A stretch of 64,000 bases of DNA from Parasitella parasitica NRRL 2501. Taxonomy: Eukaryota; Fungi; Mucoromycota. Numbering within the stretch: the first letter of the stretch is position 1; each line of letters begins with the position of its first letter. Below, in pieces: positions 34,405 through 48,499 of this stretch. The stretch is from the NCBI GenBank assembly GCA_025201805.1, contig MU619252.1:1-64000 (forward strand), in the 5' to 3' direction. The position numbers and the translations under genes are program-made. The notes under the pieces were generated by a model. It was given only the letters and a program-made list of their open reading frames with translations, was not told the origin of the DNA and searched no databases.

Positions 34405-35107
34405 TCTCCAAAATCCACAAATCATCTTTATACATTATAAAACCAACACACTCTAATAAAATTCAATCATTAATCAAGCTTTAGGAACACTTTTTGTTTG
34501 TTTGTACACTTCGAGTCTAGATGTTGTACTAAGGAAACAAACCAGAATTCCTAGAGCTTGAAATGTACACATTAGCCACATAAATGAGTCGCAGTAAGAA
34601 AATTGCCTTCTTAAAACAAACTTATTTATATAGCATGATATAGTCGATATGCCAGAAGATAATTTTCGTAAATTAGTGGATTACATCTACTTTAGCTTAC
34701 CTCTTTACCATACCTTGAAGGACAAGATTATTTATTCTCAATATTAAATGTAACCAAACTGTATCACATGTTTTTTTTTTTACGCATTACAGTACTTGAA
34801 TTCTCAATCATTATCCGAAAGTTTCAAAGCCTCGTCCAGGTCAATTGCTTTGACAAAAGGTGTTCATCACACTGAGTTCACAGGCGACACATTAGACATT
34901 AAGATTGCATTTTTCAACATGGAGGTCATAGAGGCATAGATAAGGGCTCTATTCGTAATACTGGCTGTGTTGATCCCGTGATAATAGAAAGAGATTACAT
35001 GACAGTAAAATTTCTCCCTTTTATTCACCTGAGTTTTGTATCATGTAATTTTTGAACGACAGAGTGAACCAAGCGGAAGCTTTACTTAAAAGGTCATATA
35101 GAATGTA

Positions 35108-36741
35108 CTGTGCTTCCACTCCCACTTTCCCACTTTTGTGAAAATGCCGCCCACTTTTTTGAGGTCAAATTGCCCAGAAAAATGAGACTAATTTGGCCCC
35201 ACTTTTCAGAAATAATTTGGCCATTTATCAAAACTATTTCAAAGGCTCTTTATTCAAACATATAGGGAATATGTTAATTGAATGTTGAATGAAGTTTTGT
35301 TTTTGCTCTAAAGGAATATTTTCGCTGCCTTCAATTATTCTCAAAGTCAGGGATTCCGTTGCTGTTAAGAGAGTTCTTTTAACATGCTCTTTCAGCACTT
35401 TCCAGAACATCTCGATAGGGTTAAGTTTAGGTGAATAAGGTGGAAGATACACTGGTATATAGCCTCTTCCTAAGATAATGGAGTCGATGGCTTTTGGTAT
35501 ATGAATAGGAGCATTGTCCATCACAATATGATATCCTTTCATTTCGGGGTGTTCGTCCATAATATCCAAGGCGTCGCTGATGAATTGTGCATAGTGGCCA
35601 GCTGTAGTTCCTTTTGGAATAGCAGAAGCAGCAGAATCTCCTGGTTCCTTTCGTTTTCTAGCACCAACAACTTTCCTCTTCTTGACATTGCCCGGCTCTC
35701 TCAAACTTACGTTTATCACACCAGCTGCAGAAATTGCCCCAATCACTGTATGCGATACGCCTCTTGCAGACGGCGATTCCACAATTGCGGGCTTACCTCG
35801 CGTTGACCAACATCTTGTTCGACGCATGTTTATATCAAACCCTGTTTCATCCAGGAAAACACAATTCTGCATGTAGAGCAAACCCTTTTGTAACCATTCT
35901 TCGACCCACTTTGCACGAGCTTCAATAGTCGTTGGGCTATTTCTAGCTTTGGGGTGGCGGGTGATAACCTTTATACTGAGATTACAATCTTCCTTCATGA
36001 ATTCAGCGACCCTACTTTTCTTGATCTCCAATCCTTCGAAACTTTTTGTAAGGTTTTCGACTGCGTCCAGAATGACAGCTGTGGGATTTTCATCGAAGAA
36101 GTCAACTAAGTACGCTTTGTGCTGCTCATTTAAACGACTTGGAAGGGGATTAGATGTTCGAGTTGTTTTTTTTTTGAAAGGAATTCTATTCTCGGGGTCG
36201 TTCTCGTATGCTCTCTTCCATTTTCTCGCAGTTTCTGGATTGACGTTTGCAAGTCGCGCAGCTTCAGATGACTTCAGTAGATGTTCATGTATAAAATAAA
36301 AGTAACGTCGTCGACCTTCGTCTGAATATGTGTTGTAAGTTGATATTCTCTCTTTCTTTGGTGGTGCCTCCTGCATATCGTTGTCTTTGGGCTCATCATC
36401 GACAACTACTTTTTTGTGTTTGATATACTTCTGCAGGTTTGTCAGATTTGTTAATCGAAAGGATGGCTCCACAACAAACGCTGTTGCTTCTTTGCCAGAT
36501 TCGTCTACAATTCTACCTTTGCCATCCTCTTGAAAGAAACTCATTTCAGTGTTGAATTATTGTACTGATAAAACTTTAAGAGGTCAAATTACTTCTGAAA
36601 AGTGGGCAAATTGTTTTCAAAAAACTGGGCAAATTAGTCTCTCATTTTTCTGGGCAATTTGACCTCACACAAATGTTCAAATTTATTCAAAAAAGTGGGC
36701 GGCATTTTCACAAAAGTGGGTAAGTGGGAGTGGAAGCACAG
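35108..36741 (-). mobile_element. Tc1/mariner (IS630-Tc1) DNA transposon, apparently full length
   Basis: TIRs CTGTGCTTCCACTCCCACTT... at 35108 and the reverse complement ending at 36741. TA on both sides (35106-7, 36742-3). Internal transposase ORF. Confidence 0.95.
35234..36544 (-). CDS. DD34E (DDE_3) transposase, 436 aa
   Basis: HTH region (AARLANVNPETARKW), VFLDETGF, IVMDNAPIH and LPPYSPKLNPIEMFW, with 34 residues between the second D and the E. Confidence 0.95.
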   Translation of the reverse strand: MSFFQEDGKGRIVDESGKEATAFVVEPSFRLTNLTNLQKYIKHKKVVVDDEPKDNDMQEAPPKKERISTYNTYSDEGRRRYFYFIHEHLLKSSEAARLANVNPETARKWKRAYENDPENRIPFKKKTTRTSNPLPSRLNEQHKAYLVDFFDENPTAVILDAVENLTKSFEGLEIKKSRVAEFMKEDCNLSIKVITRHPKARNSPTTIEARAKWVEEWLQKGLLYMQNCVFLDETGFDINMRRTRCWSTRGKPAIVESPSARGVSHTVIGAISAAGVINVSLREPGNVKKRKVVGARKRKEPGDSAASAIPKGTTAGHYAQFISDALDIMDEHPEMKGYHIVMDNAPIHIPKAIDSIILGRGYIPVYLPPYSPKLNPIEMFWKVLKEHVKRTLLTATESLTLRIIEGSENIPLEQKQNFIQHSINIFPICLNKEPLK

Positions 36742-37039
36742 TAACTATCGAATATTATCTAGCATCCATCCGTGTTTCCAAAAATATTTTTCGAAAAGAG
36801 AGATAGTTTTCTCTCAAGCATGTAGTCGAAAAAGTGGGACCTATATTCCGAATGTTTGATAATTAAATGGAAGCACTGGATTATCTATTATTGTGTGTAT
36901 ATTATATGTATATACATGTATATATACAAATATCTACTTGAACCAAAAATTTTAAGTTTTAGGTTATTTTTGTAAGAGGTTAAGACGTTATGTGTGTGTA
37001 AATCTATCTGCAATGGTTTCAGAGATTAGTTGTTGATAT

Positions 37040-40202: not shown

Positions 40203-42907
40203 TTACGCAGATTCGTCCGCAAGAACTTCTCGAATCTGCTCTAAGGCACTGTTTGCTCTGTCCCGAACATCTCGACTTGTATCGTTTTCCATAATCTTCA
40301 ATTTATCTTCAATACCCAATTCTCTGAGGCGTTGGCAACGTTTTATAAGATCTAATGACATAAAATGTTAATCGCCGGGGCCTAATCGACAGCAGTTCAC
40401 CTCATATCACCTTGTGAGTTCTCTTCAGAATTAGCCCAAGTCCAATTGATCATACACCAAGCAGCCGCTACTCTTACTAGTGGGTCTTCGTGTTCCTACA
40501 TTAGCAAAAAAAAAAAGGGGGCGGGAATGAGCTAATCTACATTGCCTATCGAGCTCTTTCTCAACTTACCAAATGATGAATGACACTATTTACAATATTT
40601 GGTCGACTGATAAGCGCCATTTTTGGGCCTTCAGCATCACTTGACATGTTTACTACAATGTAAAGAGCAGGCACCAATGTCTATTTTTTTGTTAGCTGTA
40701 TTACAAAACTCTTTTTCACTAGAAAGGACTCACAGAGGCCGTGATTTCTTCTTCATCTGACACACCCATATTCGATATAACCTGTAATTTGCTTTCCAAT
40801 ACGTCTAATAAATCGTCCTTTCCTATGCCCTGAATAACCCAATCGGTGTCTTCTTGTTTACCAAAAACTAAATTGCGCACGATTTCCAATGCTTGTTCCT
40901 GAATAGCAAGCTTGGGATCATGCAACAACTCAATCAAAGCATTATATGTTAAAACATCCATCACTGCTTTTTTGGCTTGAAGATCAGCTCTGAATAATAA
41001 GTTGTTAAGGGCCCAAACACCGTTGAGTTGAAGAGTACAGTCAGTGGATCGAGAATATTCTACAAATCGAGCAATGGCTCCAGCTTCTATAACACTTTTC
41101 TTCATGGGAGAAAACTCAAGCACGAGATTGCACAATGCACCGCAAGCAGCGGCTTGAACAACAAGCGATTCGTCATAAAGTAACTAAGATAATGCGGCAG
41201 TAAATATTAGCACTCGTTTAACTAATAAATATACTACCTTGATAAGCGGCGGTGCGATGCCTGCATCAACAAGACTAGTTCGAAGATGGCTGACACTGCG
41301 AGATAACGATTTGGCAGCCTGACAAGCAGCTAAACGAACGTGCTGTTGTTTGCTCGACAAGCCAGAAATGACATGAGGCAAGACTTTAGCTTCAATGGCT
41401 TGCGTACGACATTCTTCCTTTGATAGAGTAGCTGCGGCAATCGCAATCAGTGAATTTTCCTTAATTTTTTCCTTTCGCTTCGCCACACTGCCCTTTCCAG
41501 GGACGCCTAGTTGCGACCCTTCTTCCTCATCTGAATCCTTGAATGACACACTAGATAATAATTCTGCTAAACGAGAAATAGCATCAGCGTCAAAAGCCGC
41601 CTTTTGCATATCTTCGCTATCCTTAATTAAATCGGCTAATACAAGTGGGGCTCTTTCCTGAACATCATCGGTTGAATCTTGTAACAGCTTGACAAGTGCA
41701 GGTAATACAACAAGCGTGATTTCACTAAAAGGCTCTTTAAAGACACCAGTACGGTACAAGTTCGTCAAGCTACGTATCTATTAGCAAAGCCTGCATTCAA
41801 CGCTGAATAAATGAATCAACTAACCATGTGGCAGCGATTAATCTCATATTTGGATTTTTATCTCTCACGAAATCAAGGATTGTATTTGTTGTTAATTGGG
41901 TTAAATCAAGAGCTAAGCATACATTAGTAAAGGTTACTGCTAAATGCAGATATACATACTTTTTGACTTGACGATGAAATCTCCCAGCACCTTATTTTCA
42001 CGGCATAAAGTAGCAATTGCATCCAATGAAGCTTCCTGCGCTTTTATACAACCAGAATGTAATAAATTAACAAGAGGCTGAATAACTCCAGCATTTTCCA
42101 ATTGCAGCTGCTGTAGTTGAGTATCGCAGCATTTAGCAATGATAGCAGCTGTAAACTCTGCAATCATAGCATACGATAAGCCTTCCGAGGAAACATTACC
42201 TTGCGGCTCGCTTGTCAGAAAACTAGACGTAGTATCCAATAAAACGACTAAATCGTGTATGTGTTTATCCTACATAAGTATAGTAAAACACGACTACTTT
42301 AGAAATCCCTAACCCTATCCCTAATTTTCAAATACTTTACTGTAAAGGTGTCATATTTTACTGTTCTGAATGATGCAAATATGGCTTTCAAAGCTCTGGT
42401 AGCAGCCTCAATGAGTTTTCTTCTCTCTTGAATAGCTTCCAACACAGGCGTATTGTCCGGCAATTCGAGTGTGTCTAGTAGAGGGATTACAGCACCTGAT
42501 GCTACAACAGCAGAAACGTTTTCGTCTTTCCCTATTTAATTACGCACCAAACAAACGTGTCAATGTCATGTAAATGCGCATAAAATTGTCATTAAAAGTA
42601 GCGTCATACCATAGGCAATACTGCCAAGGATCGTGGCTGCCTGAATTTTCAAATTGTAGGAAGAGCTGTCGTCAGGGAAAGATAAATACTCGACCAGTCT
42701 GCATACTTGAATGTTGGTAAATGTGAAATATATCCCGTACTTTTCATGTTGAACATACCTCTGAACTACGCCAAGTTTGATGTACAATTCCTTTTTGGTT
42801 TTGTTTCCAATAACTGAATTCTTGATAAATCGAAGTGCTTTTAGTCTCTTGGCATCATCTTGCGAAGCGAGCTCCTTGATAGATTCTTCGTATTTAGATG
42901 TAGTCAT
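40203..42907 (-). CDS. VID28: Armadillo-repeat protein ARMC8/Vid28 (GID/CTLH complex subunit); multi-exon
   Basis: LRFIKNSVIGNKTKKELY, AATILGSIAYG, SLSRSVSHLRTSLVDAG, CNLVLEFSPMK and CMINWTW...RLRELG motifs. Confidence 0.88.
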
Positions 42908-43263
42908 TCTCCTAGAGTGTTGAATAGAAAAAGAAAGAGTTCCTCCCTCTCATTGCTTGCCGTTTGCATTTTTCCTGAGACTCAACTCAGATGGGCTCAA
43001 TTTTGGAAAAAATTGACCTCGGTGTAGGTAGAGCATCGATAATTAATGGGTATTGGAAACCCGACATGTTTGCATACACAGCTAGTAGCTGAACATAGTT
43101 GATAAAGCCAACGAATACCGAAAATGGAGCTCTTGGCATGTATTCTTTCTTCTTTGATAATTCATGATAACAGAACTCTTGTTTTTAAAATCCTATTATT
43201 GTGAAAATAGGGCTTTTATTGCACAAACCATCTCTTGAACTTTGTAATGTAGTTTTTTAACTT

Positions 43264-43360
43264 GGAATTGAGACGAATGGAAATATTTTTTAGACGAATG
43301 GGAATTTGATTCAAGACGAATGGAAATTGTTTTGAGACGATGAGAAAAGAAATTGAGACG
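43264..43360 (+). repeat. Left array of ~21-22-bp units ending in AGACG
   Basis: GGAATTGAGACG|AATGGAAATATTTTTTAGACG|AATGGGAATTTGATTCAAGACG|AATGGAAATTGTTTTGAGACG|ATGAGAAAAGAAATTGAGACG. Confidence 0.9.
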
Positions 43361-44383
43361 AGGTGGCCATCGACACTCATTCAACCTATGCTTCTCATAT
43401 CTGACCCGTTTTCAACCTATGCTATCTAATTTACTCTCAAAATAAGTGGTTTGGACTTGCTGTGCGGCGTGTCCGTCGTTATGATTATCTTTGCTTCCCT
43501 GCGTCTTTGGTGCTTCAAAAGAAATGGGTTTGGTGCAGCCTATTAGCCTTAGTGATATACCCCAGGAGTAGTGCCCTGGCAGCCTCGTTAGCGCTACCCA
43601 TACTTGGGACTTCGTGTCTTAGCTATTATATCAACCAAATGTACATTCACTGATTACCTTTCGCTTTCCCAAACTCATGCTCGCGGTACTTATTTTGATC
43701 TACCCCCAACTGCCCATTCCTTTTATCCCATCAATAATTGGAAAACTACACGACCCAAACCCTTTTTACCCAGTCTTTTTCTATCCCTCATTATGACATC
43801 TAAAGGACTTTCAATAAAACAATGGTTAAAAAAAATTACCTGTAAAAATCCAAATCACTCTTGCCAGTGAAACTGTGTACGATACGGCAATGTAAGAACC
43901 AAAAGCCGCATACCGGAATAACTTCTGCAGCTATAATACGCCATCGCTTAAAAGGTAATAAAACCCGAGCCACAGCCGAGGGAAACTTTTTTTGGGTAGA
44001 GGTTTCACCCCCAAATAGCATAAAGCCTGATCCTTTCTCATCAACATAGTCTAGTAAAGAAGTGGGATATTTCTCGATTCAAATGTAAAGTGGGCAAGTG
44101 AACCTTTTATATTCAAGTTCTTTGATTGCTATGAAACTTGATTTTTGGGTATGCTTCATGTAAGAGTTTTTAGCTGTCAAAACATTGACAGTAATATTGT
44201 AGTTGTACATAAATAGATATGGTATATTGGCCAACGGTGAAATCTTGAATTAAACCAGTTTTAAAAGAGCCTATACATCAATATACTATAAATTTTTCTT
44301 GAAAATGTTGTTGATTACTCTCTTCACTCTTCCTACTACATTTTTTTTCTTCTATAAATCTGTACCCTATATCATAATCAAAA

Positions 44384-46435
44384 GTGAGCTCTCTAAAAGT
44401 AACAACGATCAAGAGCTCTGTCTCTGGTCTTTGCTGGAAACCTGAATATGTACAAAGGCTTAAAACACTTGTTTTCACCACTCATACGCTTGTCACTCAT
44501 ACTTTTGCACTAACAAAGTTCATTTTCATTAATGAACTGAAGAAAAGCGAGTCTTTTGACCTTCAAAAGTAAGCTCAGAAAGAGTTCTACATGCAAGTAT
44601 TTACGGCACTCGTACAACAAAAGAAGATAGTTCCTCCAAAGACAACAAAAACAATAGAATTTAGAAACTTGATTAAGAAATACATGGAAGAATATTGCCA
44701 GCTAAGCGATTACGTTCCTGTTGAACTCAAATACTCACAACAAATCGCAGCATATGAATGCACTAAAATTAATACTGCGTACGCAAATGCTATTGCGTTA
44801 CAGTTTGGTAGTAGATTCCGTATGTTCGTCAATCAACTGACACGTCAAAAAGAGAGGGTTAAAAGTAGAAAGCAAGAGTTGCAAAAGGAAAAACGGACGG
44901 AACAAGATATAAGCAACATTATTTACAATGAGATCACGCAGCCTTGTACTCGCTTGAAGCTTTTGCTTGCATCTGGCAACATTCATAACTTGCCCACAGG
45001 CTTTTTAGACAATGAAGGAATCGCTCGTCTACAAGAATTTTTTGGCACTTATGGTTCTGAATACCAATTCAAAAAAGGAAGTATTTACTATGATTGCAAA
45101 GCAGAGCCTTTTAACCACTTGAAGGCCTATTACAAGATGTCTCAAATATGTGAACAATCTGACTATAAATCATTCATGTGCTTTCCACTTAGAAAATCAT
45201 ATGTTCCTTGTTATATGACGATCGATACCATGATCTTGAACAACCAGATTGTACAGAACAGCCAACGATCAAAGCTAGACAAAACACTTGTTTGGGGAAA
45301 AGTGGTCAATATATCATGTAGAGCTCTGAAGGATCGAGGCCAATCAAAATCAATGCAGTTTCGAGGCATGATCTTGGTTATCAAACAAAACCAAGAAACA
45401 GCTAAAGGCGGCACGAGGGGTATACACGCAAAGGATGAAGAAGACGTCCAATATATACACGAATTGACAACAAAAGAGCTCCAAGACACTACTGGCAAGT
45501 GTGTGTTTATAGATCCTGGGCGCAGGGATATGTTGTACTGCATGCACGAAAAATGCAAAGCTAAAAATGATGGGAGCCTTTACCGGTATACAAGTAATCA
45601 AAGAGCCAAAGAGACCAAGTCAAGAGAGTTTACAAAGTTGCGACATGATACGAAGCCAGAAGTAGTACAGAAGTGGGAAGAGCGTCTCTCCAAGCATTCA
45701 GCGTCAACAGTCGATGTTACAAAGTTTTCCGAGTACTTGAAAGCAAGATCAATGGCCCATGAATCGCTATCCTCATACTACAGAAACGAGGACAAAGCTC
45801 AGCGTGACCAAAATGCCCTTCCTTTCCGGAAGATGAAACTCTCCTCAATCATCAACAGGAAGCAGTCTGACAGCCGACTTGCAAAGACACTTCGAGGAAA
45901 ATTTGGAGAGGATCCCGTACTTGTAATTGGGGACTGGTCTGCTGGTAATGTCAAGTTCCACGAGCCGATACGAGGGAAGGGCATGAGAAAAATGTTGAAG
46001 AAACATGGCTTCCCTGTTTATTTGATCAATGAACATAAAACTTCTTCCCTTTGCCCTAACTGCAAAGATGGAAAGTTAAAGAACTTTTTGAATGTTCCCA
46101 ATCCACGGCCATTTCAACGAAAGAAAAGACCAGTAGTCAAGTGTCATGGGCTCCTAAGGTAAACCCTCATTTATGAAAGGTAGAACAGGTTTTTCATAAA
46201 CTTTTTTTTAATTAGATGTACAAATCAAAAATGTTTGGAGCCCACCAGACTGTGGAATAGAGACTTCGCTGCTGTTCTGAATTCTAAGGAAATCATGAAC
46301 AGCCATCGACTGGCACTTGATCGTCCTTTAAGGTTCCAAAGGCAGACACTTAAGCGTCCTTCAACAGGCAAGGATACTTCTCAAAACAAAAAATTCCGCT
46401 CTATGCCTCCTGAAGATGGCCGCAATTCTGTCTGA
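44384..46435 (+). pseudogene. Fanzor1 (TnpB-like RuvC RNA-guided endonuclease), ~664 codons after splicing, probably inactivated
   Basis: RuvC-I VFIDPGRRD, VLVIGDWS, RuvC-II LINEHKTSSL, Zn finger CPNC...C-TNQK-C, RuvC-III LWNRDFAAVLN. Intron 46159-46215. GTG in an AAA context at 44384 and in-frame TAA at 44570. Confidence 0.88.
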
Positions 46436-46499
46436 AGGAAGAATATTGATAGAGTAAACCACGATGCAGGTCCATTTTTACTTTTTCCAAAAAAGGTAA

Positions 46500-46634
46500 G
46501 CTAAACATCTCAAAATGAATTTTGATTCGTCCAGAAAAAAACTAACAAACGTCTCAATTTCTTTTCTCATCGTCTCAAAACAATTTCCATTCGTTTTGAA
46601 TCAAATTCCCATTCGTCTAAAAAATATTTCCATT
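46500..46634 (-). repeat. Right inverted array of AGACG units
   Basis: Reverse complement of the left array plus two extra degenerate inner units (…GGACG, …GAGATG). Confidence 0.9.
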
Positions 46635-47319
46635 GACCTTTTTTACCTTTCTCTCACTCAAATGTCTTTGAGTGTCCATGCATAAATTTTTTGCAAAGAA
46701 GAGTTGAGAAAGTCTCTAAGGATGAAGCACCCTATCCATGTTATTGACTTGCCAATTTTGCAATTTTATTCAAGTGTGAAACATTTCTGTTTTGCGGGTT
46801 GATATTCGAGTAAATAGGTATTATACACTTAAACAATTGTAATTCGCCTAGCGTCTTTTCACATTTCCACCAGAAGATTGGTAATCTTCATAATATCACA
46901 ACATCTTATAATGAACAAAGATTTAGTACTAGCTGATAAACCAGACCAGAGGTGGACGACGTTAATCGAATGTAGCGAGATTAAACAATTTTTCAGTAAC
47001 ATGTTATACAAGGAAGTGATAGCCAATCTTTCCCCTCTATGAATATCAAGAATAAACTCTGTCTCTAGTTTGAGATCCAGATTTATATCTGCTAGCTCTT
47101 TTTCAAAAGCTTTACAATACTTTAAAATCTGTTGCTTGTTTTACGAGATAGTTGAGTGCTCTTGCGCTTCCTATAAACAGCAATTGAAATCAACCGCAGC
47201 TTGAAATGTTTGCTTACAGTTATACCAGCGCTGATGTATCTCATGTGCCTGATGTATCTGATACATCAAATACACAGAATTGATCATATTCCTCATGAAA
47301 AAGAGCGTCGGATTCTTAT

Positions 47320-47840
47320 TACTGCCTCATTAATTTTGATGTCAATGGCTTTCTGCAAAAACCTATGGCCCCTCGTCTTACTTTCTGTCTTTGGTCAGAA
47401 TTGTTTTATTGGGTTAGCCGCAAATGAAATTGGCAGCATATGCTCCTCAATCAAAATGCACTTACGACTAACCTAGTTACAGTTTTTAAAAATAATCACG
47501 AGGTGAAAACTATATAGCTTGGTTCATCTCTATACTTTGAATCTAAATGCTCAACTGCTTCGCTGCAGTTGATGCACTCTGATCAAAGAATCGAGCCTTA
47601 CCTTGGACCTTACGCCGAACATAATTTCGTTTTGTGTTCGCCTCTTTCATACCAACGTCTTTATTTTTAAATTTTTATAGCAGCGTTGAAAAAATAGCAG
47701 AGAATTTGTATTAAACTGTAATTCTCAAGTAACCAGAATGAGTGGTAAAATATGCCAATGATAAGCTCATTCTGACAAAGATGTACTCTATGAGCCCAGT
47801 GCCGTCATTTGCATTCAATATTCTCATTTCCATGAATAAA
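47320..47840 (-). mobile_element. Degenerate, internally deleted Tc1/mariner transposase relic
   Basis: Minus-strand fragments DVGMKEANTKRNYVR...KARFF...SASTAAKQLSI* (HTH) and LNPIKQF*..ESKTRGHRFLQ (DDE C-terminus), with stops. Confidence 0.6.
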
Positions 47841-48499
47841 CATAACGTATCCACCTTTTTTTTTTGAACGCCAAGAAGCTAAAAAATCACTCACTGTGAT
47901 AACATCATTTTGAAAAGCAAAAAAGCTCTGTAAAAATATAAGATTAAAATAAAAAGTTGAATTTGATTGGCCAACAGCGATTTTTGATCTGCCGACATTT
48001 CTGATTAACTAAAGACTTTAAATTGATTGGCTGAAAATAGTGATTTTTATTGGTCGCGGCACTACCCTTCTGAATTTTTTTTTACATTTTATCCCAAATA
48101 GGTAAGCTTAATATTTGAATTTTAATTTTGATTTGTCCAGAAAAGAACTATTATCGTCTGAATTTGAAGTGTAAAAACTGTATCCTACATGTTTGCATGC
48201 ACATTCAATGTTTATATTTGTCTGTTTTTAAATCAACAGAATATTCATCTGCATTAGTGACATTGTCAGACATGTATGGTAATCAATGCAAATTTGGGTA
48301 TATGAGGTCTTCTATGTCTTGCTCGCACAACACATGCAAAAGAAGAATAGAGCTGTTTTAAATGCCAGAGATCAATCATTTCTGTCATTCTCGTCAAACC
48401 AACCAAATATTTTTTTTCCTCATTATAAAAATGACGGTTCTGACTCTTTAGACTTTTTTTCTATTTGACTGACTCACATTTCCTGATATTTTTACAGCG

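Follow-up and report, generated by a model that had tools for sequence, protein, structure and literature searches.

Transposons with mariner terminal inverted repeats (TIRs) and TA duplications that carry Fanzor1 alone were described by Bao and Jurka (2013; PMC3627910), whose Fanzor elements from Mucorales were MuDR-type and unclassified. Fanzor loci that are flanked by inverted repeats (IRs) and lack a transposase, together with protein-less "ghost" loci for SpuFz1, were reported by Saito et al. (2023; PMC10432273), and Mariner/Tc1 elements were included among the Fanzor carriers by Jiang et al. (PMC10530073). In this study, a stretch of 64,000 nucleotides from Parasitella parasitica NRRL 2501 (contig MU619252.1, positions 1 to 64,000 of the forward strand; hereafter the window) was analyzed, where the region from ~43250 to 46634 was interpreted, with a probability of about 0.88, as a decayed, non-autonomous transposon of the Tc1/mariner type whose only cargo is a Fanzor1 gene. 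Given these three precedents, the layout of the element is already known. The ends, which the original prediction had suggested to be of an undescribed architecture, follow the Tc1/mariner pattern, with precedents in PMC3627910 and PMC10432273. The window locus itself is ordinary, adding a further dead Fanzor1 to a class of carriers already known. The only uncommon feature is found in a sister copy, from whose RNA a transposon end is spliced out.

As in the PUl-4-type elements (PMC3627910), which occur in another host clade, Fanzor1 is the sole cargo here, TA duplications and Tc1/mariner-type ends are present, and no transposase is carried. Compared with the elements of that study, however, the TIRs are long (~110-200 bp) and studded with repeats, and their sequence is common to at least four genera. 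The Spu-1/SpuFz1 loci (PMC10432273) resemble the elements described here in having a Fanzor without a transposase between the IRs, as well as short protein-less relatives. While Spu-1 has IRs of 30 nt and an omegaRNA that spans the right IR straight into the flank (PMC10432273), the right end is 100-200 nt long in the present elements and was spliced out in one sister copy. The protein-less counterparts of the Spu ghost loci are a 1.07-kb element on contig 44 and the element at 47480-48180 of the window. Long inverted ends with internal direct repeats that serve as transposase binding sites are characteristic of Tc1-like elements of the inverted repeat/direct repeat (IR/DR) type, such as Sleeping Beauty, and CAGT tips with long, multi-repeat TIRs are typical of Tc1. 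The same TA/CAGT tips (slashes mark element boundaries and splice junctions), long inverted ends, and repeated short motifs in each end were observed here, but each end has a larger number of repeat units, a transposase gene is absent, and the cargo is a nuclease.

In agreement with the predicted ~85-bp inverted repeats around the gene, the window element has two arms of 85 nt (43276-43360 and 46550-46634) with 99% complementarity. They are built of 21-22-bp units with a AGACGAATGGRAAT core, and the genome (32.8 Mb) has arrays of these units in just three places, namely the window, contig 22, and contig 149. The true termini of the element family read TA/CAGTTTTTTAAC..., and the outer tip of the Fanzor end family begins TACAGTTTTTCTAC.... 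An element start at 43264 had been proposed; the left end was instead found near 43250, as it extends 26 bases beyond the repeat first delimited (TAGTTTTTTAACTTGGAATTGAGACG) and matches the contig-22 copy in this extension. A contig of run X13 matched 43251-43361. The left tip, TAGTTTTTTAACTTGG, has its first base changed from C to T, and its flank is TG, as opposed to TA in the sister copy. Within the window, a single occurrence of the 24-nt tip was found, at the left end, and the reverse complement of the tip is missing at the right; hence, the outermost 26 nt of the right repeat (the CAGTTTTTTAACTTGGAATTGAGACG tip) have been lost. Because of the TG flank and the lost right tip, the window copy itself cannot show a TA duplication, and with a mutated left tip and 26 nt lost from the right end it is probably no longer mobilizable.

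The type of the element was therefore read from its relatives. The sister copy on contig 22 is ~1.65 kb long, internally deleted, and 95% identical over 620 bp, with the ends TA/CAGTTTTTTAA...TTAAAAAACTG/TA. The right subterminal segment of the window element (46471-46560) also has counterparts at paired sites in other parts of the genome. Family B (contigs 188, 46, 8, 25, and 2) comprises elements of ~3.8 kb with inverted arms of 119-204 bp in the complete copies, and its cargo in the copies read is a divergent multi-exon Fanzor without a transposase. Four complete copies have the form TA/CAG...CTG/TA with TIRs of ~190 bp (an intact copy is located at contig 25:19614-23421), a fifth is damaged and lacks its left tip, and a sixth has the right end CTG/TA. 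Family C (contig 77) contains only a Fanzor, in addition to a non-long-terminal-repeat (non-LTR) insertion, and again no transposase. Families A and B and the short element of the window have CAGTTTTT(T/C)TA... tips; the tip of family C is CAGTATTTC, and that of the contig-44 element, a short protein-less relative, is CAGTTTTAC. The right ends of the families finish ...CTG. A solo end of the TIR family was found on contig 69. In this genome, elements with these ends have either Fanzor genes alone as cargo or no cargo. Beyond this genome, in Cokeromyces recurvatus (L074) and Gilbertella persicaria (L079), the Fanzor genes are followed by the same right-end sequence, which ends CTG/TA.

Flanks of 2-bp TA were seen at either end of the contig-22 copy, four family-B copies, and the 47480-48180 element in the window. 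The bases beside the TA differ between the two sides in loci L061 and L062 and in the contig-22 copy, so the duplication is a 2-bp TA and not a 3-bp TWA. The Tc1/mariner type was assigned on the basis of these TA duplications, the CAGT tips, and the long inverted ends with internal direct repeats. An origin of the ends from another TA- or TWA-targeting superfamily (PIF/Harbinger or pogo-like) would accord with the finding that no transposase is linked to them; it was considered unlikely given the length of the duplication, the Tc1-typical tips and multi-repeat TIRs, and the presence in the same window of an intact Tc1 (35106-36743) with the same general layout.

Two further elements of the window touch on this comparison. 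Downstream of the Fanzor element, at a distance of 0.85 kb, there is a protein-less relative of ~700 bp (47478-48182; TA/CAGTTTTTAAAAA ... GTGTAAAAACTG/TA) that resembles the SpuFz1 ghost loci. The Tc1/mariner element at 35106-36743 is 1.64 kb long and apparently intact; it encodes a transposase of 436 residues on the minus strand (35234-36544), and has TA/CTGTGCTTCC tips and ends of ~130 bp studded with CCCACTTTT repeats.

No transposase was found inside the window element, as the original prediction had stated, nor in the family-B and family-C elements read. At least 171 DDE_3 matches were detected across the genome, of which one, among the matches listed, was near a site with the tip or inner repeat motif. 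This match, an ORF on contig 35, sits on the opposite strand ~2 kb inward of a family-B left end and was read as a nested insertion. The Tc1 element of the window was rejected as a partner, its TIRs being unrelated to the ends of the Fanzor element, and two paired tip-like matches found on contig 12 proved to belong to a large inverted duplication without a transposase. The proposed search for a transposase-bearing element with the same ends thus yielded no partner in the readable sequence of this assembly. Across at least four genera of Mucorales, Fanzor elements have one end sequence of the Tc1/mariner type in common, which points to a conserved partner transposase.

The main ORF of the element (44591-46159, 523 codons) lies between the repeat arms. 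It matched PpFz1, the Fanzor1 of P. parasitica (PDB 9cf0), with an E-value of 2.7e-121, and SpuFz1 of Spizellomyces (PDB 8gkh) with an E-value of 4.3e-45, confirming a Fanzor1/TnpB-family gene in a Mucoralean genome. A Pfam search of the ORF returned only a weak match to the TNB zinc ribbon (PF07282, E=0.0024), below the cut-off. The catalytic D (IDPG), E (NEHKTS), and D (WNRD) of RuvC and the C4 zinc finger, all of which had been predicted, were located: the triad is complete (IDPGRRD at 45509-45529, NEHKTSS at 46028-46048, and WNRD at 46253-46264), and the zinc ribbon cysteines are intact (CPNC at 46052-46063 and CTNQKC at 46217-46234). Their spacing agrees with the Fanzor motif D-X(125,275)-[TS]-[TS]-X-X-[C4 zinc finger]-X(5,50)-RD (Bao and Jurka, 2013; PMC3627910), as the D of IDPGRRD is separated by 176 residues from the TSS of NEHKTSS, which is followed by CPNC...C..C, and the WNRD is placed 9 residues past the last cysteine of the zinc ribbon, within the spacing of the motif.

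A homologue search of the gene, in which the exons were searched separately, identified 105 proteins at E<=0.001, the top ones being 50-55% identical. Among the best 60 of these, all named matches were Mucoralean, while proteins from Coemansia (Kickxellales) and from metagenomes ranked lower. The nearest solved relative, PpFz1 (PDB 9CF0-9CF3; Xu et al., 2024; PMC11423790), has the RuvC triad and the TNB zinc ribbon in common with the window protein. It carries, in addition, a cyclophilin-binding insertion (FRI) of ~100 residues (PMC11423790) that is missing from the window protein, as seen in the gap of the PDB match, where query positions 401/408 pair with chain positions 985/1092. The window copy, in addition, is a pseudogene. 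Judged by its sequence, the window gene is by descent a Fanzor1, a eukaryotic RNA-guided nuclease of the TnpB family, in a copy that would no longer function as a gene.

The gene model was examined against homologues of ~620 residues (P0003 of Cokeromyces and P0001 of Pilaira; 50% identity), which follow one frame between 44393-44399 and 46159 and resume at 46216-46432, and in an alignment of 15 homologues that the three window pieces entered as separate fragments. The original prediction had joined three frames into one gene of ~664 codons. Its junction at 46158/46216 was upheld: the 57-nt GT..AG intron is absent from a contig of run X7, which contains the joined form (joint 46156>46214, cut +2). 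In contrast, its junction at 44572/44591 dissolved into an in-frame TAA. The frames 44384-44572 and 44591 onward are one frame with the TAA between them; an intron was ruled out, as the 18-nt gap 44573-44590 is in frame, pairs with coding residues of the homologues, and is present in RNA. The TAA column is occupied by F, H, Y, or L in 11 aligned homologues, with the other four of the 15 stopping short of it. A contig of run X7 agrees with the window over 44339-45619 without a gap or mismatch, and the TAA is thus kept in RNA.

Further signs of decay were found on either side of this stop. Direct reading of the sequence between the stop at 44375 and position 44570 revealed no in-frame ATG, and upstream N-terminal exons in 43361-44377 were rejected, as a tblastn search of this segment with eight homologues, including ones of 800-880 residues, showed no similarity. 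Near 45373, following RGMI, a deletion of 21 bp removed the seven residues xTDG(V/I)(G/A)V, which are kept in all 15 aligned homologues; the deletion is unique to the window copy among the aligned sequences. By analogy to Fanzor structures, the lost segment would correspond to a strand of the conserved WED sheet. Because of the TAA, the missing start codon, and the seven-residue deletion, the locus was classified as a transcribed, partly spliced pseudogene rather than the intact gene proposed before, and it is predicted to be unable to make a full-length protein.

The possibility that a shortened nuclease is made from the ATG at 44591 and works with a guide RNA from the tail was judged very unlikely. 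A transcript is present and the 523-codon frame holds all catalytic motifs, but two short upstream ORFs precede this ATG in the transcript, the product would lack ~70 N-terminal residues conserved in longer models as well as the xTDGxxV strand (15/15), the fold of the tail is not significant (z=-0.74), and the tail ends in a truncated repeat. An intact three-exon gene of ~664 codons in a mobile element with a new end architecture is extremely improbable, since the evidence in its favor (intact triad and zinc ribbon, 99% complementary repeats, transcription, and splicing of the 3' intron) is outweighed by a supposed first intron that is in-frame homologous coding sequence present in RNA, the lack of an ATG, the seven-residue deletion, and Tc1-like termini of which one is truncated.

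Transcription of the locus and splicing of the coding intron were both observed in contigs of run X7. This run is RNA-derived in practice, as its contigs also lack three introns of the neighboring minus-strand gene. The element was present in seven runs from six studies, one run being possibly the source of this DNA and not independent. In runs X10, X11, and X13, the flanking single-copy gene was not covered at 88% likeness (in X10, except for one short piece at the window edge); these runs, which are labelled as the same species, are too diverged at this gene to be used as empty-site controls. At 42207-42346, 43194-43311, and 46489-46626, nearly all differences between the X10 contigs and the window are G>A or C>T, strand by strand. 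This pattern is that of bisulfite-converted or deaminated DNA and not of strain divergence.

Several points weigh against the interpretation of the locus as a Tc1/mariner-type transposon with a dead Fanzor1. The RNA status of run X7 is a software guess supported only by intron-removal joints, three in the neighboring gene and one here, and the contigs are blind to strand and to rare isoforms. On sequence alone, an N-terminally truncated product from the ATG at 44591 might still be made. A partner transposase could hide in the N-masked interiors of several related loci, among them the locus at contig 77:32908. Finally, the putative Tc1/mariner assignment draws on the ends and the TA flanks, and not on a demonstrated transposase.

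Taken as a Tc1/mariner-type carrier, the element family would operate as follows. The intact relatives have TA target duplications, CAGT...ACTG termini, and inverted ends of 100-200 bp packed with short direct repeats. These repeats are putative binding sites for a Tc1/mariner transposase that would be supplied in trans, and the Fanzor protein would, by comparison with PpFz1 and SpuFz1, bind a short guide RNA derived from the 3' tail and the right end. The window copy appears to be still transcribed with its coding intron still spliced, would yield no full-length protein, and is probably immobile.

The right end of the family includes signals of a different kind. In the 3' tail, the segment conserved with Cokeromyces ends CAG/GT at ~46473/46474, and a U/A hairpin follows at 46478-46499, whose 3' arm holds an invariant donor-like AAG/GTAAGC (46493/46494). 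This motif is the most conserved block of the right ends (7/7 aligned sequences) and is followed by CTAAC, which resembles a branch point and is located at 46542-46546 in the window. The sense strand of 46540-46634 contains no AG, as compared to six CT. In addition, many relatives have an earlier CAG/GTRAGT just after a stop-codon hairpin.

Splicing at this end was observed for the sister copy. A contig of run X7 that leaves the window at 46203 reads ACTTTTTCTAAAAAAG-GCATGCTATCGAAT, and the two halves are 116 nt apart on contig 22 (L069, 2553/2554 and 2669/2670). The skipped part, which starts with GTAAGC and ends with CAG, takes in the outer right repeat in full together with the TA and 10 nt of flank. 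The contig-22 transcript was therefore spliced from the repeat donor AAG/GTAAGC to an acceptor 12 nt past the element. This event was read from one X7 contig, and its product is at most a candidate guide RNA. The right end of the window copy is unspliced, with contigs 46214-46579 and 46550-47050 both continuous.

A tentative and rather doubtful generalization is that the right end of the TIR family doubles as a spliceosomal intron, with AAG/GTAAGC as the donor, CTAAC as the branch site, and an AG-free run to the terminus. Its splicing would remove the putative transposase-binding repeats and set the guide scaffold beside flanking host DNA. If true, a long Tc1-type end would become compatible with the OMEGA rule, under which the flank supplies the guide. 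Should guide RNAs in the native host be made by such splicing, the published Fanzor guide RNAs, which were defined in yeast, may include intron sequence, and guide design for Fanzor enzymes would need revisiting. Among the matches listed, no description of right-end splicing of Fanzor elements was found in the Fanzor literature on splicing.

A search for a guide RNA in Rfam gave no match, and a tRNA scan was likewise negative. The aligned right ends had no consensus structure (-0.44 kcal/mol, 0 covarying pairs), and the fold of the window tail was no better than that of shuffled sequences (z=-0.74). In more distant relatives (Gilbertella, Rhizopus, Pilaira, and Helicostylum), a hairpin with a UUAYCG loop was found at the stop codon, with 78.6% of cells paired compared to 62% in shuffles and four of seven pairs changed on both sides. 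The motif is missing in the subfamily of the window and Cokeromyces. Compared by eye, this hairpin resembles SL1 of the PpFz1 omegaRNA. Similarly, the PpFz1 omegaRNA contains ...ATGCAGGTAAGC..., and a CAGGT / AGGTAAGC motif that appears similar by eye is present in the 3' tail of the window element and its relatives.

Table 1. Features of the Fanzor1 element, with positions counted from the first nucleotide of the window.
Feature	Positions	Strand	Observations
Left terminal inverted repeat	43250..43360	+	TAGTTTTTTAACTTGG tip, three 21-22-bp AGACGAATGGRAAT units, two further GAGACG units
Upstream non-coding DNA, ~1 kb	43361..44377	+	No protein similarity; RNA contig 43331-43900
N-terminal Fanzor1 remnant, 64 codons	44378..44569	+	Open from stop 44375; no ATG; GTG at 44384
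In-frame TAA	44570..44572	+	F/H/Y/L in homologues; retained in RNA
Main Fanzor1 coding block (REC/WED/RuvC/TNB)	44573..46158	+	21-bp deletion near 45373; without FRI
Spliceosomal intron, 57 nt, GT..AG, in the zinc-ribbon/RuvC-III region	46159..46215	+	X7 joint; homologue alignment
Last exon: second half of zinc ribbon, WNRD RuvC D, stop 46433-46435	46216..46435	+	Homologue alignment; motifs
3' tail	46436..46549	+	Unspliced in the window copy
Right terminal inverted repeat	46550..46634	-	Outer 26 nt (CAGTTTTTTAACTTGGAATTGAGACG tip) missing; sense strand AG-free over 46540-46634

Within the upstream part of the element, a 53-bp fragment (43767-43819) matches at least eight other loci at 85-92% identity. 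AATAAA and a poly(A) run come after the match at those loci, and the fragment was therefore identified as the 3' tail of a retroelement or retrocopy.

Rearrangements around DDE_3 ORFs were also observed elsewhere in the genome. On contig 10 (178026-181792; L036, L046), sequence with a DDE_3 (Tc1/mariner) ORF, probably a nested insertion, interrupts a more distant Fanzor between residues ~390 and 391. A perfect-looking inverted duplication on contig 12 (213198-219167; L073) has arms of >600 nt that are 99% identical around ~4.5 kb with two ORFs, and it was picked up only through one TACAGTATTTTTACTTT word. Several DDE_3 ORFs are found twice, as identical copies 4-8 kb from each other and in opposite orientation, for example on contig 46 (167897/175900), contig 128 (47419/51283), and contig 38 (61848/67094), which suggests large inverted duplications or foldback-like structures.

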